DNA of 64,000 nucleotides from Glycera tridactyla (lineage: Eukaryota): NCBI GenBank assembly GCA_965644265.1, contig OZ286468.1, positions 49,910,001-49,974,000 of the forward strand, in the 5' to 3' direction. A model generated the notes under the pieces. That model searched no databases, was not told where the DNA came from, and saw only the letters and a list, made by a program, of their open reading frames with translations. Positions 3,301 to 24,437 of the stretch are shown here, one piece after another. The stretch's first letter is position 1, and each line of letters opens with the position of its first letter. A program made the translations under genes and the position numbers.

Positions 3301-6300
3301 ATTACTACAAAAACACCAGTCATATATTGAGTCACGCCGTATCTTAACATTCTTATCTGTATGCTGACGTGTGATAAGAAATACATAGATAAGCATAATA
3401 GTCTCTCTACGGATGAACACATATGTGTTGCTAGCGAGGGTGTTTTACCCAAAGGTTCAGGGTTCAACTCCCGTTGGGAAAAAAGGTCGACTTTGGTATT
3501 TGAAACTTTCCACAGGCCTACTGCCCAGACAATGATTACCATCAGAAAGGTGTTGTATTATTTGTTTGTAGCACGCTGGTTTCGAGTTTGGGTGATTTCT
3601 TTATTTGTTTGTTTGGGTTTGACGTCTTTTCAACCACCTTGGGTTAAATCGGACTGGAAAACTTCAAGTGCTGAAGAAAAGAGCCACCGCTTTCGGATGC
3701 CGTCCCCACTCTTTACGAAAGACAGCAGTGGGTCTTCTAGGTTATCACATACACATGTCCGGCTTTTGATATCCCGGTCGGCATGCACTGGGTTGGGTTC
3801 GGGGTTGGGTTGTCACAGGAAGAGACCTAGTCTGAGGCCTTCGGTTCGACCCCAATTAGGAACCCGTTATTGGACATTAGACGCAAGAAATATGAATTAA
3901 TCAAGGGGTCTTCGAGAAATTAGGGGACGTACCAGACTAAAGGCGATGAGCATTATGCGAGTCTGAGGGCCAAGTCTTGAAGCGACCTTGTCTGAGATGA
4001 GACCTCCAACGAGCACGCTGATGACGCCCCCAACTATGGGGATCCAGCCCAGATACTGAGCGATCTCGATGGGTTCTTGTCCTTCCAGCTCGAAATAGAC
4101 CTCAGCATAGTAGGACCACACGTAACCCGCTGAAACAGATCACTCCAATGACTGAGCAAGAAACATCTACTACAAGTGTTAGGATAGTAATATCTATAGC
4201 TTCAGCGATCCTCCAGTGAAGATATCACCCGTGACAACTTGTGTATGTATAAACTAGTCATAAGTGGAGTACCCTAGAGTGCTCTGCTGTACCCTGTAGT
4301 GTGACTGTATAAATGTGGAAGGCAGATCTGTTGCTTGTCTTTGTATGTATACTGCAATGTACCAAGAAGCTATTGCTGAAGTCTCAGAGTCGTTGGACTT
4401 ATTTCCCCAACAAAGCACATCCAAACAACGAGAGCGCTAAGGCGCACCGTGGAGAATTTGCGACCTGTAATAGGCGAAAATGACACTCAAAATTCCAACA
4501 GAAATCAACATGCTGGCTGGAGCGTCTTCAAACACATCCAGCACAATATATCAAGCCCCGCCTCTTGCATGCCAATCCCCGCCCACTCATCTCCTCATCC
4601 AATCATATAACCTCATTTTTTTCTCAAGAAGTATAAAGGGGCGGGACACACCTTTATTGTATTCATAAGCCCATCACCATCAATATTATTCACTACCTCC
4701 GCCCAGTTGAAGTAAGCCTAGAAAAACGGGCCATGCATGATTCGCCTGTGGTATAAAAGCATGGACGCATGGATAATGAGTAGAATAAAGAACATTTTAT
4801 TTACGGATACTCTCGTGCGATCTCACATGCTCTCATTCATGGTCACATTCAAGGTCTCATTTATGGGACCATTTTGTAAGACCAGTGACACTTTTTGGAA
4901 GGTTAACACGATTGATATAATTCATCTGACTCATCGGACTGGATAAAGGTGCTACACGGCCTTAGTGCGGGCCTGCATTTGGAGTGATATGAAGGACTGC
5001 CTACCTGCATTTCTGATTGAGCCCGCCAGACACAGGACCAGTAATGTCGGGTTACAGAAATATTTGCATAACACCATGGCTCTTCTCCACCACGTGACTT
5101 CCTCTCCGCCAATCAGATCGCGGATATCTGCTTCGTCATTGCCGTCCTTCTTGAGACGTTTCTCTGGCTCCCGCACCGTGAAATAGAGGATGATTCCCAC
5201 ACCAACACCGAAAATGCCACTGATGTAGAAGGCCCAACGCCAACCCTACAAGCATGTCAGATGTGAATACAAATACGTGCACATTCATTATGCCANNNNN
5301 NNNNNNNNNNNNNNNNNNNNNNNNNNNNNNNNNNNNNNNNNNNNNNNNNNNNNNNNNNNNNNNNNNNNNNNNNNNNNNNNNNNNNNNNNNNNNNNNNNNN
5401 NNNNNNNNNNNNNNNNNNNNNNNNNNNNNNNNNNNNNNNNNNNNNNNNNNNNNNNNNNNNNNNNNNNNNNNNNNNNNNNNNNNNNNNNNNNNNNNNNNNN
5501 NNNNNNNNNNNNNNNNNNNNNNNNNNNNNNNNNNNNNNNNNNNNNNNNNNNNNNNNNNATCATCCGGCTTGTATATTCGATTGATTTATTGGTCAAAGTT
5601 TGATGGCACGCAACATCCTCAAATGGTACGTGTTTCTAATCTATGAGAGCTAAACACTCTGCTCACAAACCCTGAACACAGGATGATGGGGAATAAGACA
5701 CGTTGTCTCGTGGAAGTAGCTGCCACTCCATAAATGACGGTAGCTTCACAATAATCATTCCCTGTGCTTTGCTTGCATGTCCATGCCACCACACTTACTA
5801 GTGAACCTAGCCACTGCCCATGCAACCCAGAACGGGCATGCCACCCCCTAACTCGCACTCATGCTCACTCATTCATCAACTAATTTCCACAATCACTCAT
5901 TCAATCAAATTCTGACACGTAACACGTATGCTATCAGGTGTTCTCTCACTCACCAGATCGAGTATATCCGCTTCAGTGATGTAATCCCCGACGGCGAAGG
6001 CCAGGCTGTAGCCGATGTAGATGCCCCAGTTATACACCCCGAGGGCAGAGGCTCGCCAATTGGCCGGGAAGTAATCAGCAATGATGGAGGAGGCAAACGG
6101 TGTACAACCAGCCTCACTGCAACAGCCACAAAATGATTGAATCAAAAATGACAAAGGGTGAAAAATGTAATCATCCCCAAAGTGTACCTAACGCTACGAA
6201 GAAGAGTCCGATATTTAGATATTACTCTTCAATTCAAGGGCTACAATTATAGTTCTTCCCCCAGGACCATCAGGGACTATAACAACCCAACGACAGCGAC

Positions 6301-9300
6301 CAAGCAGAGCGAGAGCATCGAAGTCTCCAAGCCATCCTTGCCAACATCTAGTTACTGGCATCGCACTTATCACCAATGACAATTTGTCAAAATTGCATTG
6401 CCATGATAACGATGGAGATTTTGGCGAACATCCTATAGAAACATGAATAGCAAGCCGACGGCCATTGGACATCAATGAATGTCGGAGCGACAAGATTGGA
6501 CGTGCGATGTTCATCTATTTCTGGTCCAATGTCCAGTGGACATCCAGAAGTCGATGCTTGCTTTCGATTGGGTCATTGCAATTGCCCGGACATTCATTAA
6601 GACGTCTGTTGGACGTCAACAAATTGGCATAAGTTTTTCTGATACTAATTCATGTCCATTGAACGTGCAAATTTATCTCCAACGTATCAGACGACTGGGG
6701 ACATCCACTGACGTCTAATGGACGTCGACGTGCTATCAGGGTCGTAGTTTCTTTTCATTTTCTTTCATATTTCAATTCTTCTACTTTCTTATATTTGGGC
6801 CATAGGTTCAAATATAATTGTCAGCATTGTTATCATCGTTGTCATCGTCGTCGCCATCGATCATCAATCATCACCATCACAATCACCATCCATCGTAATA
6901 TCCATCATTCTTCGAGAGGTCTTGAAGCAAGTGATCCAATACTCTCTTCTGAACACGGTCACTCCTATATAGTATAGTAGATGTCTGATTCTTTCCATCT
7001 ACCTTTGCTACCGCCTCCCACAGTCACCCTATTGTCATATTATCTGCCTGTTCTTACTTTTGTCACCATGCCACTTCACCATGCTATCTGTATTCACTCA
7101 TGTTTCTGAATCTCCTTGTTAAGTTTTCATCGTTCATCGTTATGGTTTAACTTAGTATGTTTTAGTCAAGTTTCATTTCCAATTTGACACCATGTAAGCA
7201 ATTGAAATGACATTCGTTCATTGCTTTCCTGAATGAAGTACAGTCGAACCTGTCTATAAAGACCGCCTTCGGTCACATAAAAAAGCGGTCTTTATGGCCA
7301 GGTGGTCTTTATAGAGAGGTAATTTACTGTTGAAAATACTACCATGGTCGCAGCTCAGGTGGTCTTTATAGGGAGGTGGTCTTTATAGAGAGGTGGTCTT
7401 TAGAGCAGGTTCGACTGTATTTACGAACACATACAGACAGTGCCGCCCACGAACTCACAATATGCGAGGTGAAAACAAGAAAGTTCGTCTCATATCCAAA
7501 ATGTGTTCCTACTTACAAGACTCCGAGCCCGAAGCGTAGAAGAGCCAGCTCCCAGTACTCCTGTACAGTGCCAGTCAGGACAGTCATGACTGACCACATG
7601 ATAAGACAGAGAGACAGTATCCTCACACGATTGTAGTAATCCCCGGCGAGACTGAGTGGGATCCCTGAAAAAACAAAGGCAGGATATTGTATATGTTGAG
7701 TCTACCGGTACTAACGTTACATGACGAATACACGTCAAGTAAAACATCGTGAGCTTTTTTTTCAGAACATTTCCTGTACACCCAGGAAAGTTCCTGAAAA
7801 GAAAATCTCACATAGCCAACAATTCATAGTAATTGCGGCCTTGTAAAATCCCTCGGCCAATTCCACCTCGTGGAATATTCCCAGAGCCATCAACTGGCAT
7901 GTTTTTTTTTCCATAATACCAACCAACCAACCAACCCGATAAACCATCATCACCGCCNNNNNNNNNNNNNNNNNNNNNNNNNNNNNNNNNNNNNNNNNNN
8001 NNNNNNNNNNNNNNNNNNNNNNNNNNNNNNNNNNNNNNNNNNNNNNNNNNNNNNNNNNNNNNNNNNNNNNNNNNNNNNNNNNNNNNNNNNCACCACCACC
8101 ACTACTCCTATCATCATCACCATCATCATCACTACCCCACTACATCTACTACCACTACCCCCACCACCACCACCACCGCCAACAACAACATCACCGCAGG
8201 ACACAGAGCTGCTGGTCTGATGCCTGGTGTGTGCATAGGTACAAATCTGGACAACCCACCACCCGATGGACGCCAACCTCTGATGGAATGAAAATAGTAA
8301 TAGGGCCAATTTCAAAGAGTAGCAGTACCAGTTATTACAATGTTATGATCAGAAATATTCTGATTTTCATCCGTGAAATACAAGAATTTAGATCAAAGGG
8401 TAGTTGCTATTCCACATCTCACCTGCCACGGTGTAACAGATGATGAAGATTGGTCCGACGAGCAGATCATACTCGAATCCCGTCCCCGTGTACACCCACT
8501 GACACACAGTGGAATTCGCATAGTTTGTCTTCCGGTAACAACTACAAACAATCAATCAATTTATAGATCCTATGTCACAATGAATTCCGAATTAGTTTAC
8601 TAAATACGTTCAGAATTTCACCAATCCATGGTATTTGCTTTCAATAATACTGGTGATTACCCAAATATATTTCGTGCTGTGTGGAGATACATTGCTGGTA
8701 AAAAGGACATGCTGGCAGTGGCTGGTGAGGATTGTGATCAAACCTTTCGAGAAATGTTCATGCAATTGGAGATGGTTAGAATGAAACTATAATCATGATA
8801 TTCCGTTGAAATGTGCAAGTTATATTTCCAGAAATCATTCACTTTCTTTTTGTGGATTTTAATCTGGATCTCCGGCATGACGTGCCATTTTTTCGTTTGG
8901 TCCTAGGTCAATGGTAGTGCTATAACATATAGATCCAGAGCAGCCACAGAATGTCCCTCTTCAGCGTATATGCATGCACATGAAAGTGCGAGATAAGATA
9001 TTTCAATAGTCATTCGCTGACAGGCTTTCGCCCTGCCGAGAGTAGACATCCCATTTAAGAATAGCTAACAGCAGCATCAGGCGTCGTTCGTGCTACTTGG
9101 CAGAAAAAGTAATCCATCATCAAAAGTAATCCAACAAACAAACAAACCTGATTTCTTCAGTGAAGGATGTACAATCGGTGCCGTTGATTTCGGCCTTGGT
9201 ATAAGAGGAGTTCACTTGACAAGTCTGGTCGCCATAGTCCAGATCTTCAGCCATGGCGACAGTGCAGACGGAGAGCAGGTATCGGTCCAGCTGGTTGGTG

Positions 9301-12300
9301 AGGTAAGTGATGAGCAGGAGGAGGAGCACGTAGAATCTGTACACGTACGAACCCCATCCCGTCGACTTGCTCGGGTTGAACAGCGACGACGTCTCGTCAA
9401 TTTCTTTCAGTTTGGATGGTGGCGGTGTTGATGGTGGTGATGGTGTTAGTGGTGGCTTCTCGTTCTCACTGTCAACAGAGATACCATGTGGATTTTTATA
9501 AGTCATTATTATGGGGAAAATGATCAAAGTGGCGATTTGTTGGCGAGATGGCGCCACTTGGCTTGCAGCGACGGCAGAACAGTCGAGGTCTTCTTCTGCT
9601 GCTGCCGTTACAGATTCTGCCACCGCTGTTGCTACCACTACTACTACTGATGNNNNNNNNNNNNNNNNNNNNNNNNNNNNNNNNNNNNNNNNNNNNNNNN
9701 NNNNNNNNNNNNNNNNNNNNNNNNNNNNNNNNNNNNNNNNNNNNNNNNNNNNNNNNNNNNNNNNNNNNNNNNNNNNNNNNNNNNNNNNNNNNNNNNNNNN
9801 NNNNNNNNNNNNNNNNNNNNNNNNNNNNNNNNNNNNNNCAACAAAAACAACAACTACTTCTTCTACTACTAATACATCTACTTCTACCACGACCACTACC
9901 ACTACTACTTATATCAAAGGCAGAAAGAACCTTATCTAAAAATAATCAGAATGCAGACACGCAAAAAGAGACAAGATGAAGGGAAGCCCGGGCGCATATT
10001 TAGAGAATATGCTCAATCAGGTATCTCAAACTGCCGTGCCAGTTTATTTGGAGGCGGGGTATAGCGCTAGTGATTTTGTATTTATACAACCACTGTCGGT
10101 GCTCTTTCCACTCATTAAAAACATGCCCCCACACGATTTATCTGTGGTGAAAGAGCAAGGTTGCATGGAGATTACTTTTGTTTGTTTGCGGTTTAAGGAC
10201 ATGTATCAACCCTAGAGTTATGTATGCCGTGTGTTCCTGGTTAATGAAAGCTAGATGTTCTCTCTCCTGCAGACATCTCTCTCACAAACCTTGGACACAA
10301 GATGATGGGGAACCTGAAAGCTTGTCAAGTGGAAGTAGCTAACAGTCCAGACACACCTCTGCCTACTCTTCAGCCGGTTGCTGAGTTGAATGTATCATGC
10401 TCCACTTGTTGGTTATGGCATGTGATCTCACAAGGCCTCAAGCATGCGAATATGAGAGGAGATTATCAGTGAACTGAATTGCTTTAATTGCCCATATGCT
10501 CAATTTCCATGATGGGTGGATTTGTTTTGACACACCAGACCAGATACAGGTATCACAAAGATAATTTCACATAGATGAAATGTTCATGACAAAACTCAGA
10601 TGGTGGCAATTTGGCAAAGATCGGATTTGACGATGAGGGCATGAGAGGATTTGCAAGCAAATTCTCAAACAAGGCATAAAATGCACAAAAGGCTCGCATG
10701 CACGCCGCTCGTCAAAAGGGGACACATCTGTGTGTGTATGCCCCAACACCCCACCCTTCCCCCAAACACCCACCTCAATACCCCAACCCACCTCCCAATC
10801 CCACCACCCCCAGCCCCTACCTCCCCAACCCCACCCCACTAATCCCCCACCCCACCCTTCCCCTCTCCCCATCCCACCCATCTCCCCCACCCCTCTCCCC
10901 AACACCTCCCCCTTCCCCCCCATCCCCGGTCTCTACCTCCCCCTACCCCATCCCATACACATACACAAATTTATAACCAAACCCCAACCCCAACCCCAAT
11001 CACCACCCACCAACCCTCACATGCACGTACCCCAAATACACACACACACATGCACACACCCAAACCCCTCCACACCACGCCCCACCCTTACCACCCCACC
11101 CTTCCCCTCACACACCCATCCTTCACCCCCATACCCACAGCCCACCCCATCCACCTTCCCCACCCCAACCCACACCCCAACAATGAAAGGACAGTCGGAG
11201 AATGGTGTACATTTTCTATGGTCTCATGCAACTCAGACAGTTTTTTTTCAACTATATGAGATGGATTATGAAAAAGATTGCTCCCATGTTGTTGTCCAAC
11301 TACTGATGCATATGTATACAGAATATCAAGAATGTAGGTGCAATATTGACTGAGTGAGGCTTCAAAGAAAAATTTTAACCAAAACTTTAACCAAAACCTT
11401 AACCTCAGACCTTCACGCCGGCTGGCCGGCTGGACCAACTGCATGATTACAAAGACTCGCATTTAGCTTTGCATGCGAGCCAAAAATAGAAATGAGACAT
11501 GAGACCAGCTTCTGCATGATACAATGTGATGTTCTATCACACCGACCAACCGAACCATCAAAGTAACTACTGTTGCTTATTGAGAGATTGCATGGTATCA
11601 CACTAGTTCAAGGACATTGCAGACGCTATCCTTATGACGGATCACTAAGATGGTGTAATATATCTATTCACATGCACCCGGAGGTCGCGTATCACATGCT
11701 TCCTACATAGTAGTATCACAATTAGAATTACACTTCTTGACCTGAATTATACCGCATGATTACCATGATGTTCTGCTGATAAAAATCAGTCTTGATTGTG
11801 ATAAGTTGAAAACACAGAAATATCGCATAATCCACCATGCGGACAGAGTCATGATGACCTCATCGATATCATTTTCACTTTGTTTACTGATGATACTGCT
11901 ATCTCTCAAATTGTAATGTTTTTCTTCATGAGTAACTGTATCTGTAGGTATTTCTACACGATATGTTTTGTGTTTGTATAAGAGGTGGAAATGAGTCAGT
12001 TTGGATCATCTAATAAATACTTATGGAGACTTTGTACAGAAATGTCTCGACCCGCCGTTCAAATATAACACTACTATCGGATTCTCGCAATGGAATCGGT
12101 TACCGAATACAAAATTTGCCCTTTCTTACAGAAACATCACCATCACTGAAAACATTATAGTGCAAAGTTTGCTACGTCATGATTGGGTACTAAACAATCC
12201 AAGAGCTACGGGAGATATCAACCTAATTGCTGCATTGAGTTGACACTAAGCGTGTTTACGGGTGGTGGAAAGCATCCATGATGATTGCATATGGGAAGAT

Positions 12301-13118
12301 ACCAAACGCAATTTCATCTTGGAAGGCGCAACAATTAAGCGAACAGAAACGTATGCCAGCCACCACTTGGTTAAGTTGCTACACTGAGAAAATGGAACAA
12401 GGTGTTACATAAGGGGGTAGGGTTATGATCTAAAATGAAAAATATATTGTAAGAATGAACCCCAAAATGAAAACTTTGAAACAAATGAGAGAATCCATCA
12501 CTGGTTGCTTCTAGAGTGCAGGGCGTCAACTGTAGAGAAATATATAACATGCAAAAATTATCCAAGCATCTATATTTTCTACAAAGCAAATACAGTCAAA
12601 CCTGTTCTAAGCATGATCAAGGGGAGGAGTAGAACTCAATTCTTGGAACCAGATCATAATAAGGAAAACAGCCTCTAGTCAAATGGAATATGACAATTGT
12701 TGGTCAGTGAAAGAATTCTACAGCCAGAACATTCTAAGGAATATTACACACTCATATGAGTTGAGACAAATCTTATTGGTGAACCTTGGTGACTATGGAT
12801 CATGCTTAGAGTGAGTTTGAATGCATCCCGCAATAGCAATTAAGTAGTGCCAGTAGGTGCGTCACGAATATGAGGAAACCCACTATACTCAGGGACAACG
12901 TTTGTTGGCAGCGGCAATCTGAGGAATCAAAGAGAGAAAGTAGTCCCTCTTAATGACCCCCCCCCCCACTAGTTGATGACTGGGTATAACCGCAACATCA
13001 ATTGATAGTTCATGTTGGCCATTGGCTGATGGTGGGGGGGGGGGTAATTCAGGGGTAACCAGATGATTGAGTCCATATGTGGAGTGTGTTTGTATGTTTT
13101 TGTGTGTATGTGTGCATG

Positions 13119-13179
<61 letters not shown>

Positions 13180-16100
13180 ATGTGTGTTCCTGTGTAAAGG
13201 ATAGATTAACATCACAGTCATAATGGACTTCATTGTTAGTCCAAAATATAGAATTATGTTTTTCTTTGGTTTGTGTTAGGAAGAAGTGGTAAAACATCTG
13301 AAATTAGCCCACCCGATTCCTGCTTCCAGCTTTGTGTATCAATGAGGATGCCACTGAATAAAAGAAATAGCAAGGTTTTCCTCTCTGGCTGTGATGGCTG
13401 GTAAATCATTGTAAGGGTAGGGGAGTGATGACTCCCATACCCTACACTGAATTACCAGAATACTTGGACTATTTGGCAAGGACTCATCATCCACATGGGC
13501 GGAGGGGTTTTATCACCAGTCATGGCAGTGGGTAATCACAACAATGAAAGTCTATCCCCTTGATTCGCCGCTACCAACTAACGTTGTCCCTGAGTATAGT
13601 ATACAAGTGCGTGTTGATGATTAGTACATTATTATAAGGTGATGTGTCGTACCTAAATGTGAAGTGGTGAATGATACAGCATAGCATTAATATATGCAAA
13701 CAACTTCATTAGTACTTATTTGTTAATCATGCAAGACAACAGAGAAGGCAACTACTCGGGGACGTCGGTTGAACTTCTCCGATGTTCAACAGACTCCAGA
13801 AGCAGCGGATATCTACTGAGAAGTCGAATAAAAAGTACCTTTCAGTTTTGTCTTTCTCCTTTGGGGAACCACTCCGTGGTGTTGTTGGCTTCGGTGGTGA
13901 GGATTTCAGAGGCGTTTCCCTACGTAGAAAAGACCGTATTATGTTATAGATTAGATATCATCCTTGCCCCCGTCACTACCACTAAGAAAAAAGCCTACTC
14001 TGATAAAGACTGAATGAATCAAGATTATTTTGTACTATATACTACATAGAGTAGTGTATATCAATCTTTGTTGGAATGAACAGCACTGCGTGAGGGAGTA
14101 GATTTCAATGTTTGTTAGTCTTTGTCTGGATTATATGAGACCGAGAGATAGGGTCAAATCTCAAATATATTACCGAAACCATGCTCGGGCTGTTGTATCG
14201 CACGGCCAGCATTATACTCTTAGCAAAATTATAGAGTGACCCTTATACGTGTATACTTTACAATTATATTCCGTGGCAGGCATGTTGAAGCTGGAGCCTT
14301 TCCCATCTCCCTGGGGAGTGTACAACCATGAACACAGAATCAATCAATCTACAATCACCATCACTGCTTAGGGCCAAGTACCCATTCACACCTGAGTGAA
14401 GTGGAATGGTGGAGTACGGAGGTTAAACTAAGTCACCTCCACGCTATAAGGTGCCTCTTTGAATAGAAGTGCAGGTATGTGTGATGATGCAGGTCCGGTC
14501 TTGAATTGTGAACCTTGTTCATTTTGGTCGCCCATCCCAGCAAGGGCACTGCTCACAGCCGTGAACAATGCTGTTCAACAGTGAACCAGAGTGACTGCAC
14601 CCAACACGCTTGCCTGAGATGACTGAATGCTTCAGTGAATGTCTAGTCTCGGACTGAATGTGTTGTCATAGTTTGGGAGGAAGTTGCGAGGAAATATTTT
14701 GCTCTATCACCAACGCAGATGAATACCTTTCAGTGGTCGCTTTCTCTTCGGGGGAGTCACTGCGTCGTGGGCTAGCTGGCTTCCGTGGTGGGGTATATTC
14801 GGGTGGCTTCCTGTACAAGAGAATAACCGAATTGTTTCAGAGTGGGACTTCCTCATCTCCACAAGCCCCGGACAAGTGGGAACTACTGAATAGAGGCATC
14901 TGGAGTAGGTTATCAAGATGGGTGTTTTGAACGGATGAGAATATTGATTGATTGGTCGATTTACTTATTGAATTTCAACTGTATGTATCAGCCCAAACAA
15001 TTATACATGACATGGAGTTCTAGAGTATGGGAGCTGAATGTTCGGTCCCCTGCTACATCAAGTGCACTCATCTCACTCTATTACCATTTATATAATCCTG
15101 TGTTACTAATTCATTATATTGAGTTTCGACTTTTAAATATGATACGACTCACGGAAGATATATTTCAATTTGAATTCCACTAATATGCTGCTTGCAACAT
15201 TTACTGGTCTAAGTACAACTTTATTGTCCTGAATAATCCAAATAAGTGTACATGGATTTGATTAGACATGTCTTATGAAAATAAATGTCAAGTGGACGCA
15301 ATCTTATTGCATTGTATCATTGGTTGAAAAGATACTAGAGGAAAATGCTTTGCTGGTTGCGCGAACTGTCCATGGCCACACCAGCGTCTAATCGCACTGC
15401 TCACAAAATCACAAATTGGTTTAATGTTGGTGGTCTTTACTGAGAGGTTCATCACTGATGCCTACCTCGTCTCTCCCTCGGTGTACACGGGACTGGTCGT
15501 ATCATACGGGTTGAATGTACCTGAATACACCGGACTAGAACTGCAATACAACATTAAACAAGTCATTGCACTCATATATTATCTCTTTCATGGCAAATCC
15601 TCCATTCTGGAGAACTGTTTGATACATCTGTATCCATTTAGGCCTCAAACACCATCTCACACCTGACATAAGGTATCTGATTGACAGCATTCATAAGGGG
15701 ACTATTTCCTTGAGAGCACACACTGAAGACACAGTTTTTTTGGCCTGCTGCTGCCCTGAGTGATCAGTGAAAATTGCATGTAAAATGAATGAGGAGTTGC
15801 GCAGCCAAGAAAGTGTGATGGACTGACGGACTGATGAACTGACGGACTGACGGACGGCCACTATTTCAATATCCCTACGCCTTTCGGCGTTGCGCAGCCA
15901 ATAATTCACAAGTAAAATTCAAAAAAAGGCTATAACATCTCAAAAAATAATCTGATCATGAAACCCTGACAATATGCACTGAATAACCTCACGATGATCA
16001 TTCTGTGAAAGTTTGGTGAAAATCGCATGTAAAATGAATGGGAGTTGCGCAGCCAAGAAATTGTGACGGATGGACGGACTGACGGATTGATGGACTGACG

Positions 16101-19100
16101 GACTGACGGACAGCCACTATTTTAATATCCCTATGCCTTTCGGCAAGAGATAAAAAAACAAGTGCAAAACATTGAAGCAAGTCAATGAATGATGGTGGCA
16201 TTCTGGTGATTCAAGAAATCATGGTCTGGCTGAAGATAATACAAAGAAAAAATGTTATATCTGGGAAAATCGACAGAAAATATTCAAATTCGAACTCGAT
16301 CAGCAATACGAATATGCTAGAATGGATAAATAATTCTACTCTTTCAATTACTTCATGGCTATGGACTATAAGCTAGGAGCATCAGAAGAAAATATTTCTC
16401 TCGTAGGAGGCGATGTCTCCCCGACTCTTGGTGATGTTGTATTTATTATTTGTGCAATCCGTGGGCAGGTGTACAATTCACATGTATCAATCCAGTAGAA
16501 GATACTCTCACGAGCGCAGCCCAGTGGGGACAATTGTAGACAGGTGGCCTTTGTATAGAGGTGGTCACTTGAGCAGGTTCGACAATGTAATATGTAAAAT
16601 TGAAAAATCGTGCTCAAAATTGAAGATTTTCTCCACAAATATTCCAAGATTTTGTCCCTCTGCTAATTTCTCCCAGATGGCACATGTTTGGCAATAGCTC
16701 ATATTTTTCCATTCAACCAACTTTTAAATCTTCATAGGTCAGAACGTCTATCGGTAATGGACTTGTAAGATAATGGCACTGACTTCTTTAAGAGTATGAA
16801 CCTATGGTTATCAGTGCTGGCTCTACTCATCTGAATGTGTGATCTGGAACATTTCACACCAGAACCGAAAATGCAAGGTTTGCTAGTTTTATCAGGCATA
16901 GACCCTGATCGACCATGAGGGATACAGAGACGCTGCCTCGATACATAATATTGGATATTTGCATTCGTTGGGCATCATCAGAAGTGTCATCGGTACCCGG
17001 CTGGTTACGTTATATTTGTAGGAGCAGCTGTAGATCGTGGACAGTCACCAGTTGAACTGCGCCATATGGGGTTGTGGGTGGTATTGAATATGTAATATGT
17101 CACATGCATGACCAGCAAATATTACGAACGTGATTTTCTAGGTAATGTGATGGCATTGTACTGCGAGCGCACCCATAACGGTGAAGCAGCGGACAGTTCA
17201 GTGGCAGCAAATGGTCGCTAACGTTTTGTAACATTTTATAACAGAAAACGGGTATCCATTCTCTCTTGTCGCACTTAAGATCAAGGATACTTTATATGGA
17301 ATTTGGCTGACGTTTTCTCTGTTAGCCAAACTCAACAGCCTGCTTGTTTGTAGTTGACCGTCTGTAATTGGACAAACCGCTTAGGTATTGTCTGAACCTG
17401 ATACTTTTCCTTGTTTCAAGTGATGCGCTTTGCTGAAAAAGAAAGGCAATCCTATCAGGCGTAAGCGCTAGCTTCCTGCTAATTATATAGTCATATATGC
17501 CATCATCAGGTTCAATATCTTCATGTTGAGTAGGTAGAGGTGTGTCTGAAATGTCAGTCAGGTGGATATTTTAGATGTCTTTTAGCCCTGCCGTCATATG
17601 AGAGCCACATTACAAAGTAGTGAAGTTAATTTCTCTAATAAAATAATGATCCATTCGCGACTCACATTCAGTGGAAGGCACCATTAAGTATTTGGTGACA
17701 TTCTGTGTTTTTTGTTTGTTTAACGCCATGTACCAACGCATAGGAATAAGTATTCCGTCTGTTTAACATAATGTGGATTCCACATCAGCTGCCGCACAAC
17801 ATTAGTGTGTCCTTAGTGTATCACCTGAAATTCTATATAATTATCATTATCTGAAATGCTTACGTTTGCTATTCAGCGATCGGCACACTGTGCAATGGCA
17901 ATGAGGGCAGCAACCATACCTCACATACGACCCATGTCTGCTACTCGCTACTCCTCCCCTCCTCTTCCTTCTCCTCTCCCTGTTACTCGTGGATCCATGT
18001 CAGAATTAGTGGGATCCACAGACACTCAAGGTATGATGCCTGTGATGGAAACCCCGCTATGCATTTTCGTCAGCTATTCAAATGTCAACGGAGCGTCTTA
18101 CAAAGCGGTATATCTACAAAACTGATATTATTCAGATACACTGCCATCAATGACCTCAAATACCCAATTAGGAACTCTCCTACGTCAGCCTTTATTAAGT
18201 CGGTATCAAATTTGACAAAAAATTGTGAATCACCACCTCATCATCGGCAAGAAAAGCTTTCCATTGAGACTGCATTGTTTTGATTAAAATTGTTGTGATG
18301 AATCTGTGTGGATGGCTCAATCTATGGAATGGCTTGGTTAGTTAGCCGTTAATCACTAAAAGGGCTTAGATACGGAGTCGCCCCTGTAATGGACACGCAA
18401 GTGATCTTTTGAAACTTCTCCTCCAGGGTCTTTAACGGGAGCTGAGAGTTCATTAAACTAACTACAGAATGAACACGGAGACGTCCGTCCGCTGAGACTA
18501 GATAGTGTTCATGGTTTCAGTCGCCGAATTCAATTGTAGATCAACGGCAAATGTTTGCTGATAGATGGCCCCGCTGAATAACTGGTTGAAGCCGCGTTCA
18601 CAATGTAAATAATTGGCTGCACAGCTGTTCAGATAGGGGCTAGTCGAGATCGGAGCCGGGATGGCATATTTGTGCCTGCATATATTATACATTATATGAC
18701 ACATCATGATGTGGGAACCCACGCATTGCACGGACTATGCATGATCGTAAAATGCATTGATGATAGGTGTTTTCTTTCAACACGTATCTTGATTCATTGG
18801 TGATTGAGTAGGGCTTAACGTCTCTTCAGCCCAGGCAGAGTATTTAAGACTTGGGTTATGGTCGGTTTTAAGAAACAGCCCAAATAAATATTTGATTAAA
18901 AAAAAAGAAACTTTTTAGATATTTCTATTCCTAGATTTCTTTTCGGTATATTTCAATTTTTCGTAATGAAAAAAATGACTATTGGCTGAAGAATAGGGCA
19001 CTCCTGTCAGGGAACTGCTCTCTACCATTTGCAAAATAACAGGGTGGATCTTTCATGTGCATCCAGCATAGACACTAACCCACATGGCCGGTCTTCGATA

Positions 19101-22100
19101 ACCCAGTTGGCATGCACTGGATAAATGGGTCCAAGATCCAGATCTTTCGATACAGGCCGATGTCTTTGAATATGCAATGATATTGCAGGTTCCATTCCGT
19201 TCAAACATATCCTTCATACTTCCCAATTTGTAGCTTTGGTCATTATCTTCACTCACATACATTTCGAGCGATGATGTACATTTTGTATAGCTTGTTTGTA
19301 TTTGGATGCTCAATTTCGGAATGTTTCATTTCAAAATATTTTTATTTTACTTATTTGTTTGAGGTTTAACGGCATGTATCAACCCTAGGGTTATGTATGC
19401 CGTGTGTTCCTGCTTAATGAGAGCTAGATGTTCTCTCTCCTGCATACATCACTCTCACAAACCCTGAACACAAGTTGATGGGGAACATACTGGCGTTTAT
19501 AATTTTGGCGTATAGTGACATGCTAGTGGTTATCATGTTAACTGATTGACGGATTGATAGATTGATTGACTGGTTGGAGTTTACTGGCATGTGTCAACAC
19601 AACAGATTGATCATGCCATTTGATCCTGTTATATGGAAGCAGAGTGCCCTATCCCATGCAGGTCAACACTCTGATCAAACATTGAACATAATGTGTGAGG
19701 GAATCAGCGAACAGTTCAGACAGCCCTTAATATGTGTAACAAATAACTGATGTATCTGTTGATGCTACATCTAATCATAACTGGCTAGAAGCCAACACTC
19801 AAGCCTGATGGCCTGATGACATATCTCTTTCATCTCAAGCAAATTACCTGGTGATGGTACATCTAAATATGTAACTGGCTAGAAGCCGACAATCAAGCCT
19901 TATGACATCTCTTTCCTTTCAAGCAAATTACCTGGTGGTGGTACATCTTATCTATGTAACTGGCTAGATGTCGACACTCAAGCCTGGTGACATCTCTTTC
20001 CTTTCAAGCAAATTACCTTGTGATGGTACATCTTAGCTATGTAACTGGCTAGAAGCCGACACTCAAGCATGATGACATCTCTCATGTCAAGCAAATTGCC
20101 TGGTGATGGTACAGCTTATCTATGTAACTGGCTAGAAGCGGACACTCAAGCATGATGACATCTCTCATGTCAAGCAAATTGCCTGGTGATGGTACAGCTT
20201 AGCTATGTAACTGGCTAGAAGCCGACACTCAAGCATGATGACATCTCTCATGTCAAGCAAATTGCCTGGTGATGGTACAGCTTATCTATGTAACTGGCTA
20301 GAAGCGGACACTCAAGCATGATGACATCTCTCATGTCAAGCAAATTACCTGGTGATGGTACAGCTTAGCTATGTAACTGGCTAGAAGCTGACACTCAAGC
20401 ATGATGACATCTCTCATGTCAAGCAAATTGCCTGGTGATGGTACAGCTTATCTATGTAACTGGCTAGAAGCGGACACTCAAGCATGATGACATCTCTCAT
20501 GTCAAGCAAATTGCCTGGTGATGGTACAGCTTAGCTATGTAACTGGCTAGAAGCCGACACTCAAGCATGATGACATCTCTCATGTCAAGTAAATTGCCTG
20601 GTGATGGTACAGCTTATCTATGTAACTGGCTAGAAGCGGACACTCAAGCATGATGACATCTCTCATGTCAAGCAAATTACCTGGTGATGGTACAGCTTAG
20701 CTATGTAACTGGCTAGATGTCGACACTCAAGCCTGGTGACATCTCTTTCCTTTCAAGCAAATTACCTTGTGATGGTACATCTTAGCTATGTAACTGGCTA
20801 GAAGCCGACACTCAAGCATGATGACATCTCTCATGTCAAGCAAATTGCCTGGTGATGGTACAGCTTATCTATGTAACTGGCTAGAAGCGGACACTCAAGC
20901 ATGATGACATCTCTCATGTCAAGCAAATTGCCTGGTGATGGTACAGCTTAGCTATGTAACTGGCTAGAAGCCGACACTCAAGCATGATGACATCTCTCAT
21001 GTCAAGCAAATTGCCTGGTGATGGTACAGCTTATCTATGTAACTGGCTAGAAGCGGACACTCAAGCATGATGACATCTCTCATGTCAAGCAAATTACCTG
21101 GTGATGGTACAGCTTAGCTATGTAACTGGCTAGAAGCTGACACTCAAGCATGATGACATCTCTCATGTCAAGCAAATTGCCTGGTGATGGTACAGCTTAT
21201 CTATGTAACTGGCTAGAAGCGGACACTCAAGCATGATGACATCTCTCATGTCAAGCAAATTGCCTGGTGATGGTACAGCTTAGCTATGTAACTGGCTAGA
21301 AGCCGACACTCAAGCATGATGACATCTCTCATGTCAAGCAAATTGCCTGGTGATGGTACAGCTTATCTATGTAACTGGCTAGAAGCGGACACTCAAGCAT
21401 GATGACATCTCTCATGTCAAGCAAATTACCTGGTGATGGTACAGCTTAGCTATGTGACTGGCTAGAAGCCGACACTCAAGCATGATGACATCTCTCATGT
21501 CAAGCAAATTACCTGGTGATGGTACAGCTTAGCTATGTAACTGGCTAGAAGCCGACACTCAAGCATGATGACATCTCTCATGTCAAGTGAATTGCCTGGT
21601 GATGGTACATCTTGACTATGTAACTGGCTAGAAGCCGACACTCAAGCATGATGACCCTGAACTGGGGGGAAAAAAGCATAGGAAAATCACAGGCACACGT
21701 GGGTAGGGTGGGAGTCCAGGGTCTCTATAGATGGCAGCCACCAATGGGCGCGGGACTTTTACTCTGAAGTGTTGCCATCGGGGATGATGTGGCCTAGGTG
21801 TAGCATCATCCCTTCTCTTCTTCTCAATATCTTTTGGACTGGGGGGTTGAATGAAAACATACCTTCCAAATTTTCTATCATCTATCTTTAGGCATTTTCT
21901 ACCAAAATTGCACTATCACCAGATTTCTTTTTCTTGACCTCTTTCCTATCCCTCTAAGCTATTTCTTATTTCTTCAGTGAAATGGTCTCAGGTGTAGGTG
22001 GCTGATGGTTTGCCTGTAGCAGATATTGTCACTATGCAAAACGCGGGTACCAGGCACACCAGTTCTGGGTCACTAGGGCTGCGACTAGGTTTACTAGGTT

Positions 22101-24095
22101 GTGTGATGGCATTGTACTGCAAGCATAGGGCAAGCCATGATTGTAAAGCTGGTTTGAAGTTGACAGTTCGTAATTGAAGACATTGTTTGAGTATTCTCCG
22201 AACCTAATGCTTTTCCTTGTTTCAAGTACTGCGCTTTGCGTAAAAAAAAAAGCATAGCTATCAGGCTTGAGTGTTAGCTTCCAGCCAGTTACATAGTTAG
22301 ATATGCCATCATCAGGTTCAATATGTCTTTTTTTGTAGAGTTAGAGTTGGTAGGGGTGTGTCTGAACCATCAGCTACTTCCACTTGACAACCTTTCGGGG
22401 AGTTCCCCATCATCTTGTGTTCAGGGTTTGTGAGAGTGATGTCTGCAGGGGAGAGACCATCTAGCTTTCATTAACCAGGGACACATGGCATACATAATCC
22501 TGTGGGTTGATACATGCCGTTAAGCCTTAAACAAACAAACAAACAAACAAATCACAGGCACACAAGGTGTCATGTCAGTTGTTCGTGACTGCATAAATGG
22601 AGTGCATGAAGCGGCATGGAATCGATGCTGCTTTTCGTTAGTGTGAGTGGTCCATGGGTATAACTATTAGCTGAAGAGAGAAGGACCATTGCCAGGGAGC
22701 ATCCTCTTCTGTTATCGTTTGCTTGACTTTTCTTTAGCACCACAGTCGGAGCTCGAAGGTTCTGATCTTCCAAGCACTGGATGACAAGCTTGTTATATCA
22801 CATGCATGCAGAATAGACCCATATATACAAGACTGCCCCCCCCCCCCCAGTCGGTATGCACTGGGAAATCATGTCATCAATTTAGATCTTTCGAATCAGT
22901 CCTATTTCTATGGCATATTTAAACATATTCCTCGTACAGACTTGCTTAGATATGTTTTTCATGTCCCCAACAACATAGTAACCATTACTGGTATGTAGGT
23001 AGGACCGGGTGAGGTGAGTGTGTCCTATTCTCAAACGTGAGTAGGTCTGGGTTGGTTTTGTTCGCTAATCACTTCAACAATAAATGGCATATATCAGGAC
23101 ATCTCGGTCAGCAGGTTACCCTGTGAACATGAGTTCAACCCACATGTCCTTCACCACTATTCGTGGGTCGGTTGTAGTGCTGGTATCACAACCAGAACTA
23201 AAGTCTGTTAAATCCAAACGTGGCGGTACGTTTCACACGCTAAATTTGCCGTTTCTCGTCCGATTTTGATTATAATAGCAAACATAGGCTGTATAGGTGT
23301 TCCGTTGATCATTGAAAATAGTTTTTAGGAAGTATGCAAGCATTTGAAGGCGATACGCCATCATTTCATTGCATTTAATCGGCGAATCCGACGCCATTAT
23401 CTGGGAATCTGTAGGTGTCCAGTTGCAGCTAACAATCGCTAACGTTTTGAAATGGGAAAAGGGTCCCCCGTTCGTTTTTAACAGACTTCAGATAAAGAAT
23501 ATTTGGTAGGGGATTTGGCGATCGTTTTCTCTGTTTGCCCAACTGAACAGCCTGCTGGATTCAAACATTGTGGTTCAATAATTGATTATTTCATTTGTGT
23601 CACCTGCGCTATATTGAGAAGCCCACGCAACAGGCCTATATAGTTGGAGTCACCCCATATTCATCCTGGATCCTGTCAAAATCCATGAAACTTACAGGTA
23701 AATGAACGGTCCACCTTTTCTATGGGCCCTCTGCGCGAGGTGGATACGAAATTCACTCGTATCTCGAAGTCACTCCGGACTGGGGCCATCATGAAGAGAT
23801 AGGTGAAAATATGATTTCATTGAAATCCATGCGTGACCGGGATATTCATGAAGGAATTATTTCAACCAAAATGGATATAGTTCAAATCCACCTGCATGAC
23901 GCAAAAATTGAATACCACTGAAGGAGATAAGAACAAAACCTACACTTCATCGTCGTCATCTTCGTCGAAGGGGTTGGACGAGGCTGGAGGCCCATCTGGA
24001 AAGTCCTCATCGGCATCCTCATCGAAGGGGTTGGGTGGCGCAGAAGGCGGTGGACTTGCCGCAGAGCGATCCGTACTCCCTGCGCCTTCAGACAT
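213..24095 (-). CDS. Spinster-related MFS transporter, spliced gene model, ~651 aa. Minus-strand join: 23944-24095, 15466-15540, 14727-14810, 13839-13919, 9148-9468, 8423-8541, 7517-7664, 5954-6116, 5005-5245, 3933-4129, 3146-3230, 1992-2177, 213-316
   Basis: All introns are GT-AG with matching phases; exons sum to 1956 nt (652 codons). MFS/SPNS-like motifs: TM1 NQLDRYLL, motif-A-like AGDYYNRVR, FEAGCTPFASSIIADYFP, GWRWAFY, GGLISDKV. The nine 3' exons are secure; the four 5' exons are linked by phase and composition only. Confidence 0.85.
1992..2177 (-). CDS. MFS exon (GEVWVGVTLVIVIDLVP...NALK)
   Basis: Acceptor ctcgttccag, donor gtaagt, phase 1-1, TM segments. Confidence 0.92.
2390..3070. 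repeat. Degenerate ~41-43-bp minisatellite (core ggcccctgtctgacac...tagc..aagctgttgc.acacccc)
   Basis: ctgtctgacac core recurs at ~42-bp spacing, roughly 15 copies, inside an MFS intron. Confidence 0.85.
3146..3230 (-). CDS. MFS exon (FLAAPFTACVLLVNPPAAYYFLIPAYII)
   Basis: Acceptor ttttgtttcag, donor gtaggt, phase 0-1. Confidence 0.92.
3590..3900 (-). mobile_element. SINE-like repeat, family B
   Basis: (AAAC)n-type tail, and a central ccagtgcatgcc block shared with 18800-19200. Confidence 0.5.
3933..4129 (-). CDS. MFS exon (GYVWSYYAEVYF...GGLISDKVASRLG...AFSL)
   Basis: Acceptor ctgtttcag, donor gtacgt, phase 1-0. Confidence 0.92.
5005..5245 (-). CDS. MFS exon (GWRWAFYISGIFG...LAGSIRNA)
   Basis: Acceptor atgcttgtag, donor gtaggc, phase 0-1, typical MFS GWRWAF motif. 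Confidence 0.93.
5954..6116 (-). CDS. MFS exon (EAGCTPFASSIIADYFPANWRASALGVYNWGIYIGY...)
   Basis: Acceptor gctgttgcag, donor gtgagt, phase 2-0; aligns by eye to the spinster TM4-TM5 region. Confidence 0.93.
6445..6741. mobile_element. MITE with ~27-bp imperfect TIRs and GACGTC/GGACATC subterminal repeats (CMC/EnSpm-like CCC terminus on the right)
   Basis: Left atagcaagccgacggccattggacatc versus reverse complement of the right end atagcacgtcgacgtccattagacgtc. Confidence 0.55.
7241..7417. mobile_element. Tc1/mariner-pogo-like MITE (CAGTCGAACC TIR, TA TSD)
   Basis: TA-cagtcgaacctg...caggttcgactg-TA; relatives at 37604-37781, 40186-40342, ~50142-50300 and 51250-51410. Confidence 0.85.
7517..7664 (-). 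CDS. MFS exon (IPLSLAGDYYNRVRIL...LLRFGLGV)
   Basis: Acceptor ttgttttttcag, donor gtaagt, phase 1-2, motif-A-like loop. Confidence 0.93.
8423..8541 (-). CDS. MFS exon (CYRKTNYANSTVCQWVYTGTGFEYDLLVGPIFIICYTVA)
   Basis: Acceptor attgtttgtag, donor gtgaga, phase 2-1; needed to bridge the flanking phases. Confidence 0.9.
9148..9468 (-). CDS. MFS exon with TM1 (ENEKPPLTPSPP...NQLDRYLL...FTEEI); alternative in-frame ATG at 9506
   Basis: Acceptor atctctgttgacag (phase 2), donor gtttgt (phase 2). The frame is also open upstream to ATG 9506. Confidence 0.85.
10735..11185. repeat. C-rich (minus-strand G-rich) low-complexity tract
   Basis: Runs of cccc/cccca/cccac for ~450 bp; explains the Pro/Gly-rich spurious ORFs here. 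Confidence 0.9.
12882..13600. mobile_element. Non-autonomous TIR element (~720 bp, ~35-bp TIR) carrying a (TG)n microsatellite
   Basis: actatactcagggacaacgtttgttggcagcggc at 12882 is the reverse complement (2 mismatches) of gccgctaccaactaacgttgtccctgagtatagt ending at 13600; no TSD seen. Confidence 0.7.
13839..13919 (-). CDS. MFS N-tail cassette exon (ETPLKSSPPKPTTPRSGSPKEKDKTE)
   Basis: 81 nt, acceptor tcttttctacgtag, donor gtactt; only the phase 2-2 frame is open. Confidence 0.7.
14727..14810 (-). CDS. MFS N-tail cassette exon (KPPEYTPPRKPASPRRSDSPEEKATTE)
   Basis: 84 nt, acceptor ttctcttgtacag, donor gtattc, phase 2-2; nucleotide-homologous to the 13839-13919 exon. Confidence 0.7.
15466..15540 (-). 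CDS. MFS N-tail cassette exon (SSPVYSGTFNPYDTTSPVYTEGET)
   Basis: 75 nt, acceptor ttgtattgcag, donor gtaggc, phase 2-2. Confidence 0.65.
15765..16160 (+). mobile_element. Helentron/DINE-1-like (HINE) element, two tandem 3' ends
   Basis: (GACG/GACT)n microsatellite, then a short hairpin acgcc-tttc-ggcgt and an A-rich end; ~130-bp block duplicated. Confidence 0.55.
19745..21657. repeat. 83-bp tandem satellite (~23 units) with dimer alternation and a 749-bp higher-order repeat
   Basis: gtaactggctag recurs at 20041, 20124, 20207 and onward. Variant units recur 749 bp apart (19956/20705 and 20373/21122). Confidence 0.97.
21699..22548 (+). mobile_element. Retroposon family A copy (SINE-like or LINE 3' end) with (AAAC)n tail and 15-bp TSD
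   Basis: AAATCACAGGCACAC at 21684-21698 and 22549-22563; (AAAC)n tail; body shared with many other copies in the window. Confidence 0.8.
23944..24095 (-). CDS. Putative MFS first coding exon (MSEGAGSTDRSAASPPPSAPPNPFDEDADEDFPDGPPASSNPFDEDDDDE)
   Basis: ATG in context gcaagATGt, 50 open codons, donor GT|gtaggt in phase 2 matching the next exon; two NPF-acidic motifs. Confidence 0.7.
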
Positions 24096-24437
24096 CTTGC
24101 CGTAATGCCTTCCCGATGGCTCTTGTCGAAATGCCTTCCCGGTGGCTATTCCTTCCGATGATCAACCGTCCTTGTAGTGGTCATTGCAAGTAATGCGGGA
24201 GTCAATGCATATATAACTATCCTAAACTGACTACTCACTGAGTAGCACCAGCAGCAATGCAACCTGTCTCACTATTTGACCCCAATCATGCTGATCTGAT
24301 GTGTGGACGCACATTGACAGTCCGCCCTCATCTACGCTCACTTGTGACACACATACATATACATTGACACAATGATCAGTTTCACGGCTGCGCTGTCTAT
24401 TCACCGACTCAATCCCACAAAGACCGCGCGGACTCAC

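Follow-up and report, generated by a model that had tools for sequence, protein, structure and literature searches.

Introduction

Can a membrane transporter carry on its own tail the NPF code that is read by EH-domain proteins? The question is raised by a gene of Glycera tridactyla, found on the minus strand of a 64,000-nucleotide (nt) stretch of contig OZ286468.1 (the window, to which all coordinates refer), where an exon encoding two NPF motifs, each followed by an acidic run, lies far upstream of the exons of a Spinster-like transporter. On balance, we lean slightly toward a single gene, in which a distal start would provide the transporter with an NPF tail acting as a trafficking code for EH domains. 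Taken by itself, the splicing of this first exon to the transporter exons is quite probable, and the long-tail architecture and its novelty are likely.

EHD/RME-1 proteins are thought to reach their cargo through soluble NPF adaptors, among them MICAL-L1, Rabenosyn-5 and syndapin. All EH domains bind NPF, and the C-terminal EH domains of the EHD proteins favour an NPF flanked by acidic residues, as in MICAL-L1 (NPFEEEEED), Rabenosyn-5, Rab11-FIP2 and Rabankyrin-5 (PMC13282721), a preference that the initial annotation of this locus, made from the sequence alone, had stated correctly. In the partner table of the same article, the membrane cargoes GLUT4, KCa2.3 and Cx43 appear without a listed NPF motif (PMC13282721).

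An exon with two NPF-acidic motifs

The coding part of exon 1 occupies positions 24095 to 23944 (152 nt). It consists of an ATG at 24095, 50 codons in all and two further nucleotides, and ends in phase 2 at the donor AGT/GTAGGT. The start has an A at -3, and an in-frame TGA lies upstream at 24164-24162. As the initial annotation had proposed, this ATG exon, about 14.5 kb upstream of the transmembrane (TM) core, encodes NPFDEDADED (24032-24003) and NPFDEDDDDE (23975-23946). Would two such motifs be expected by chance? Across the 64 kb, a degenerate NPFDED pattern has no match beyond these two sites, against 0.02 expected, and in the six-frame translation of the window they are the only NPF with at least three acidic residues among the next four. 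When the 50-residue peptide was shuffled with its composition preserved, two NPF turned up at a frequency of 2e-4, and a pair with three acidic residues after each NPF in none of 20,000 shuffles.

A single relative of exon 1 was found in a set of 5.8 billion proteins, a 74-residue protein (P0293) encoded by a 505-bp metagenomic contig (L005). Of the 50 residues, 35 are identical; the ATG is kept, again preceded by an in-frame stop. The relative retains both NPF-acidic motifs (as NPFDEDDDDE and NPFDEDDEEE), together with the PDGPPAS linker between them, and there are indels of 3 and 6 nt. The similarity stops at the GT, in the same alignment column, and both exons end in phase 2, the relative's being 161 nt long. 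Synonymous sites are saturated (proportion of synonymous differences, pS, 0.89), with a proportion of nonsynonymous differences (pN) of 0.16. For exon 5, the TM1 exon of the transporter, the closest relative (P0001, on the 796-bp contig L001) is 64% identical, with pS 0.83 and pN 0.25; each against its own relative, exon 1 is thus under tighter constraint than exon 5. L005 and L001 come from one metagenome sample, ERZ23486739; scans of metagenomes gave no matches, whether exon 5 or exon 1 was the query. Exon 1 is confirmed as a real coding exon under selection, and the fact that both motifs have kept their acidic runs while synonymous sites became saturated speaks for their being functional ligands.

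Some features of the surroundings of this exon deserve a mention. A 26-bp tandem duplication (24095-24147) adjoins the ATG on its upstream side and extends over it; the second copy contains the ATG, where the first reads AGC. The GGAAGG..AGATG stretch ahead of the ATG is also present in L005. Farther upstream, a putative promoter (24545-24396, minus strand) has a CpG observed/expected ratio of 1.53, in the 99th percentile, and contains TATAAATA at 24446-24439. CpG density in the 64 kb peaks in windows at 23.7-24.3 kb (exon 1), at 9.0-9.6 kb (exon 5) and at the BRCA1-like 5' islands.

From exon 1 to the membrane

Exon 5 (9468-9148) begins after tctctgttgacag with a phase-2 acceptor. It encodes the end of a Pro/Ser/Thr-rich tail, runs into TM1 with its NQLDR motif, and closes on the start of a loop rich in cysteines and N-glycosylation sites. 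There is no Met ahead of TM1 in the Glycera exon, and the protein must therefore start from an upstream exon or from an in-frame ATG (9506-9504), 38 nt upstream of the exon-5 acceptor, which could open a short isoform. In the relative, the acceptor is strong (a long T-rich tract, then cag) and in the same phase 2, with the donor at the same place; on its upstream side there is an in-frame stop, and no ATG that could serve as a start. Although the exons differ in length, the donor of exon 1 thus fits the acceptor of exon 5 in phase in both species. A motif ahead of TM1, K[ED][IL]DE[TL]SSL (9405-9379; about 118-144 in L001), is common to both species and could be a further sorting signal of the ExxxL type.

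Between exons 1 and 5 the sequence shows no Pfam domain, no other coding-like run and no further gene. Neither exons 2-4 nor the long open frames tested in this interval match a Pfam family, and coding-like TM segments are absent too; a SCAMP or other gene hidden in the introns was considered and rejected on this lack of Pfam matches. An assembly gap (9653-9838) lies in the putative intron between exons 4 and 5. It begins 185 nt upstream of the exon-5 acceptor, and no frame of the model crosses it. The flanks of the gap (9839-9945 and 9540-9652) are triplet repeats of the GTA/GTG/GAA type, and the stretch 9540-9600, just ahead of the ATG at 9506, is CpG-rich; the gap is probably inside a microsatellite adjoining a possible proximal promoter.

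Three segments, each bordered by an AG acceptor and a GTA donor, could carry the frame across this interval. Exon 2 (15540-15466, 75 nt) is Tyr-rich, with SPVY twice and FNPY; exon 3 (14810-14727, 84 nt) contains PPEY, TPPR and SPRR; exon 4 (13919-13839, 81 nt) contains SPPK, TPR and SPKEK. The initial annotation had described these segments as all being in phase 2-2, which holds, and every skipping combination remains in frame when the split codons are checked by hand. The phosphorylation and Tyr motifs that it had listed are likewise present (TPPR, SPRR, both SPVY, FNPY), as is SPPK, except that its TPRS is just a minimal T-P site.

Exons 3 and 4 resemble each other over 70 nt ending at the donor (74% identity, with a 3-nt indel). 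Their local alignment score of 44 compares with 15.2 +/- 2.7 for shuffled sequences, none of 500 shuffles reaching it, and the flanks align no better than chance: the similarity is confined to the exon. This is what an old exon duplication under constraint leaves behind: the two exons are duplicates and share their phase by descent. The idea that the 5' end of exon 5 gave rise to both exons was also considered and rejected, as 57 and 49 of 500 shuffles reach the DNA similarity seen.

Coding potential was scored by codon log-odds trained on the window's sure exons, about 4100 codons in all, the null being 1601 open non-coding segments (-0.21 +/- 0.17). A TG microsatellite (13085-13191) was masked in this analysis, as in the exon-finding and BLAST analyses. 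Exons 1 to 4 score 0.34, 0.13, 0.23 and 0.43 per codon, values reached by fractions of 0.002, 0.02, 0.005 and 0/1601 of the null, and in every exon the proposed frame outscores the other two. In an unbiased scan of 25500-9469 by total score, exon 1 ranks first, exon 4 second and exon 3 fifth. The signal is one of amino-acid and codon composition together; synonymous-codon bias alone does not separate exons 1-4 from the null. The same approach brings out two more coding-like AG..GT segments on the minus strand, 18024-17952 and 11923-11836 (total log-odds 7.0 and 8.1), whose lengths are not multiples of three; they could be chance occurrences or unrecognised alternative exons.

Might exons 1-4 nevertheless be open frames that arose by chance and have no function? 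They are short and of low-complexity composition, as such frames would be. The conservation of exon 1, with its saturated synonymous sites and low pN, the confinement of the exon 3/4 similarity to the exon, and the high coding scores nearly refute this explanation already, and we find it scarcely credible.

A Spinster-like transmembrane core

What does the tail lead into? The TM core (8541-213) has a continuous and complete frame, established by tblastn of the Mytilus protein P0063 and other relatives and by Pfam MFS_1 pieces. Its exons lie at 8541-8423, 7664-7517, 6116-5954, 5245-5005, 4129-3933, 3230-3146, 2177-1992 and 316-213, with the stop codon in the last. Relatives align contiguously across two assembly gaps within the core (7958-8090 and 5296-5558), which places both gaps in introns. 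The long model amounts to about 651 residues, against about 533 for a start at ATG 9506.

The gene belongs to the MFS, with a 12-TM core of which every exon is present in frame. Exons were searched one at a time, each as its own query; Pfam MFS_1 matches four separate exon pieces, which as fragments each fall under the whole-protein cut-off, and PF07690 is carried by the full-length relatives. With exon 5 as query against 1.84 billion representatives, 132 relatives were retrieved, mostly single-exon fragments. The closest full-length one, Mytilus P0063, led to a family whose best 120 members were listed and extend from sponges to coelacanth, under database names such as "MFS-type efflux pump MSMEG_3705-like", "protein spinster homolog 1-like" and "D-galactonate transporter". 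That listing takes in sponges, placozoans and cnidarians and, among vertebrates, sharks, sturgeon, gar, tarpon and coelacanth; tetrapods are missing from the best 120, and the family may have been lost in them.

The resemblance to this MSMEG_3705-like family (for instance Mytilus P0063 and Owenia P0171) is close. Identity to P0063 ranges from 29 to 59% among the core exons and comes to about 48-52% when all aligned exons are taken together; the total core length is similar. The family motifs EAGCTPFA, GVYNWGIY and GWRWA are all present in the Glycera gene, as are the TM1 motif NQLDR and the Cys-rich, N-glycosylated TM1-TM2 loop (YGDxxC ... CxWxYxGxGxEY).

Among solved structures, a profile of 25 family members (A4) matches the bacterial HnSpns best (6e8j, 2.7e-46), followed by SPNS1 (7e-28), SPNS2 (4e-27) and DgoT (5e-24); a single exon alone matches 6e8j at 8e-9. 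The matches to HnSpns, SPNS1 and SPNS2 span nearly the full length of the family, and the nearest solved structures being Spinster-type, the gene would fall in the Spinster clade (HnSpns/SPNS, SLC63). SPNS1 and SPNS2 score far under HnSpns and slightly above DgoT, and they lack the Cys-rich TM1-TM2 loop and the N-tail. The label "Spinster-like" is therefore fair in a broad sense, given the profile matches to HnSpns, SPNS1 and SPNS2, and the transporter identity given by the initial annotation is upheld in that sense by these matches, by MFS_1 and by the family names; these scores put the gene nearest to bacterial HnSpns and give no ground for calling it an SPNS1-3 orthologue.

One transcription unit or two?

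Several points weigh against reading exon 1 and the transporter as a single gene with an EH-read tail, and it is here that they have to be set out. Some concern the link itself. The relatives of exon 1 and exon 5 lie on separate contigs of 505 and 796 bp and show no linkage, and neither the exon-5 protein search nor the one that led to the family listing returned a protein of this species. Sequencing runs matching 14300-24299 do so for a small share of the sampled words (0.05-0.09). Part of these words may be accounted for by a minisatellite in the 8.4-kb first intron (19826-21655; 22 copies of an 83-bp unit, 94% matches).

Others concern the tails of relatives. NQLDR lies at residue 17-92 (median 45) in the 120 listed relatives, against about 190 in the long model, and there is no NPF anywhere in those 120 proteins. 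Among the 132 exon-5 matches there is one lone NPF, non-acidic and downstream of TM1, and the isoforms of relatives compared below contain none. In all, about 290 relatives have short N-tails without an N-terminal or acidic NPF, and the 10 kb upstream of the family genes in Owenia, Capitella and Paralvinella contain no NPF-acidic frame or exon. The architecture is absent from every relative examined.

The remaining ones concern the motifs and middle exons. The match of exon 1 to the Rabenosyn-5 NPF repeat of Pfam (PF16601) is weak: the E value is 0.005, and the 17.7 bits fall short of the cut-off of 27.6. A PSAP in exon 1 was dropped as a motif; it is not kept in the relative and is probably a chance occurrence. 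The PPEY of exon 3, a WW-domain-type motif that the initial annotation had not listed, has shuffle odds of 0.06. Exon 2 has weak support, with the lowest coding score and the weakest acceptor of all (8/14 in the polypyrimidine tract), and open AG..GT segments in phase 2-2 are no rarer than expected, the 14.5 kb containing 19 where shuffled sequence gives 22 +/- 5.6.

Could exon 1, with or without exons 2-4, then be a transcription unit of its own, for instance one for a small disordered NPF protein or one joined to some other partner downstream, with the transporter made from ATG 9506 alone? A start at this ATG gives a protein of about 533 residues with NQLDR at about 70, a tail length typical of the family and within its range of 17-92; the CpG-dense island at 9.0-9.6 kb and the adjoining gap, which could hide a promoter, would suit such a start, as would the lack of NPF tails in the relatives examined. 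We consider this improbable nonetheless. Between exon 1 and the transporter there is neither a terminal exon nor another gene or Pfam domain, exons 3 and 4 have the phase of exon 5, and the relative keeps a strong exon-5 acceptor, which in both species has the phase of the exon-1 donor and which in the relative is preceded by the in-frame stop and by no usable ATG. The single gene, with exon 1 spliced to exon 5 directly or through other exons, fits these observations better.

The ATG at 9506 need not compete with this single gene, and the family-typical length of its product and the CpG-dense island together make it probable that a short isoform starting there coexists with the long one. Long and short N-terminal isoforms differing by an upstream coding exon are found in Mytilus, Dreissena, Crassostrea, Gigantopelta, Daphnia and the hemichordate Ptychodera, and the scallop Ylistrum has three isoforms differing by in-frame cassette inserts in the N-tail (sets compared: P0267/P0266, P0269, P0160/P0274, P0288/P0284, P0292/P0187 and P0265/P0144/P0264). 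Two Glycera forms, a long one begun in exon 1 and a short one begun at ATG 9506, would match this habit of the family. In several of the relatives' long isoforms, but not in the short ones, there is an acidic dileucine-like motif (EREPLL, DRPLL, TEPLI). In this respect the relatives and Glycera differ: the former have short tails, often with [DE]xxPL[LI] in the long isoforms, whereas the latter would have a tail of about 190 residues over four extra exons, with two NPF-acidic motifs. Because relatives and the three annelid upstream regions are without NPF tails, the NPF tail appears to be lineage-restricted, and one sorting code, dileucine-like, may have been replaced by another.

Are exons 2-4 combined at will, as their symmetric phases had suggested to the initial annotation? 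Phase symmetry is by itself no proof, since it occurs at chance frequency. The chances are even that these exons are constitutive, or that some of them are not exons, with no combinatorial splicing and with symmetric phases resulting from duplication and chance. Exons 3 and 4, as duplicates, share their phase by descent, and exon 2 is the one with the weakest acceptor and coding score. The in-frame N-tail cassettes of the scallop relative speak against this alternative, as does the fact that all skipping combinations stay open.

A possible trafficking code and its candidate readers

How would a single gene of this kind work? Transcription of a long mRNA would begin at the distal promoter, about 14.6 kb before the TM1 exon. 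Translation would begin in exon 1, which would also encode an acidic and disordered cytosolic tail bearing the two NPF-acidic motifs; exons 2-4 would contribute about 80 residues rich in Pro, Ser, Thr and Tyr, with one PPEY and several proline-directed sites; exon 5 would join in the same phase and lead into TM1. The twin motifs would most likely be ligands of an EH-domain protein, and because of the acidic flank that follows each NPF, a protein of the EHD/RME-1 type is the best guess for the partner. The tail might then set the endosomal recycling or sorting of the transporter, as the acidic dileucine-like motif may do in the long isoforms of relatives, and a short isoform from a proximal promoter at ATG 9506, without the NPF code, would probably be made alongside. 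The motifs should face the cytosol, as judged from the N-in topology of the MFS and from the N-glycosylation sequons and cysteines of the TM1-TM2 loop.

The feature that marks EHD ligands, an NPF directly followed by an acidic cluster, is present in exon 1 in two copies, both kept in the second species. As in MICAL-L1, Rabenosyn-5, Rab11-FIP2 and Rabankyrin-5, each NPF is directly followed by at least three acidic residues. These ligands are soluble or peripheral adaptors, whereas the Glycera motifs are predicted to sit on the polytopic cargo itself. A more ambitious version of the mechanism makes the transporter a direct EHD/RME-1 ligand by means of a lineage-specific exon, with two promoters, and perhaps PPEY and phosphorylation cassettes, switching the recycling code, and with the fission machinery recruited without an adaptor. 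This version is tentative, and we hold it to be less likely than not.

The NPF tail might also be real and belong to the transporter, and its partner be another EH protein such as Eps15, intersectin, Reps or gamma-synergin, which would imply internalisation or sorting between the trans-Golgi network and endosomes and not recycling; Nedd4-type ubiquitination through the PPEY might add to it. NPF alone does not discriminate here, as every EH domain binds it (PMC13282721). SCAMP1, an integral membrane protein like the transporter, has N-terminal cytosolic NPF repeats that bind EH domains, and their reader is gamma-synergin (PMC8927860). In Glycera, by contrast, no SCAMP membrane domain follows the motifs (there is no Pfam match to one in the tested frames), the membrane part is a 12-TM MFS core, and the flanks are strongly acidic. 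On yeast cargo, NPFX(1,2)D is an endocytic signal read by Sla1p (PMC2199253). This signal too lies on the cargo's own cytosolic tail, and NPFDED fits its pattern. The domain of Sla1 that reads it, SHD1, is fungal and is not known from metazoans, which argues against a Sla1-like reader in Glycera. The shuffle odds of the PPEY count against the Nedd4 addition. More generally, the long acidic run right after both NPF, kept in two species, is of the kind reported to favour the EH domains of EHD proteins, and a partner other than EHD is for us unlikely, though with a real chance of being the right one.

The surrounding sequence

A dispersed repeat with a translated core ..PDDGISNYVTGWKLTLKPDSYAF.. 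is present in four copies, at 22340-22035 and 17570-17325 on the minus strand and at 25124-25354 and 29440-29811 on the plus strand. The copies of this PDDGISNYVTGWKLTLKPDSYAF-core repeat, which lie in both orientations, in introns as well as upstream of the gene, resemble a short interspersed nuclear element (SINE) or a miniature inverted-repeat transposable element (MITE). Farther upstream, a very acidic open frame of 471 codons (39703-38291, minus strand) has no Pfam match, and coding-like windows occur near 34.0-34.8 kb (34045, minus strand). These are probably the 3' part of one or more upstream genes, leaving about 10 kb of intergenic sequence before exon 1.

Conclusion

What would such a transporter mean? 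Among the papers searched, none joins "spinster" with "NPF motif". Should exon 1 prove unlinked, the finding would shrink to a small conserved NPF peptide gene beside an ordinary MFS gene. If the single-gene reading is true, the Glycera transporter would be a natural example of adaptor-free coupling of a cargo to the EH network, for which the SCAMPs are the only close precedent. It would also give a handle on an unstudied family of animal Spinster-like transporters, in which the N-tails look like a sorting code that evolves and is switched between isoforms.

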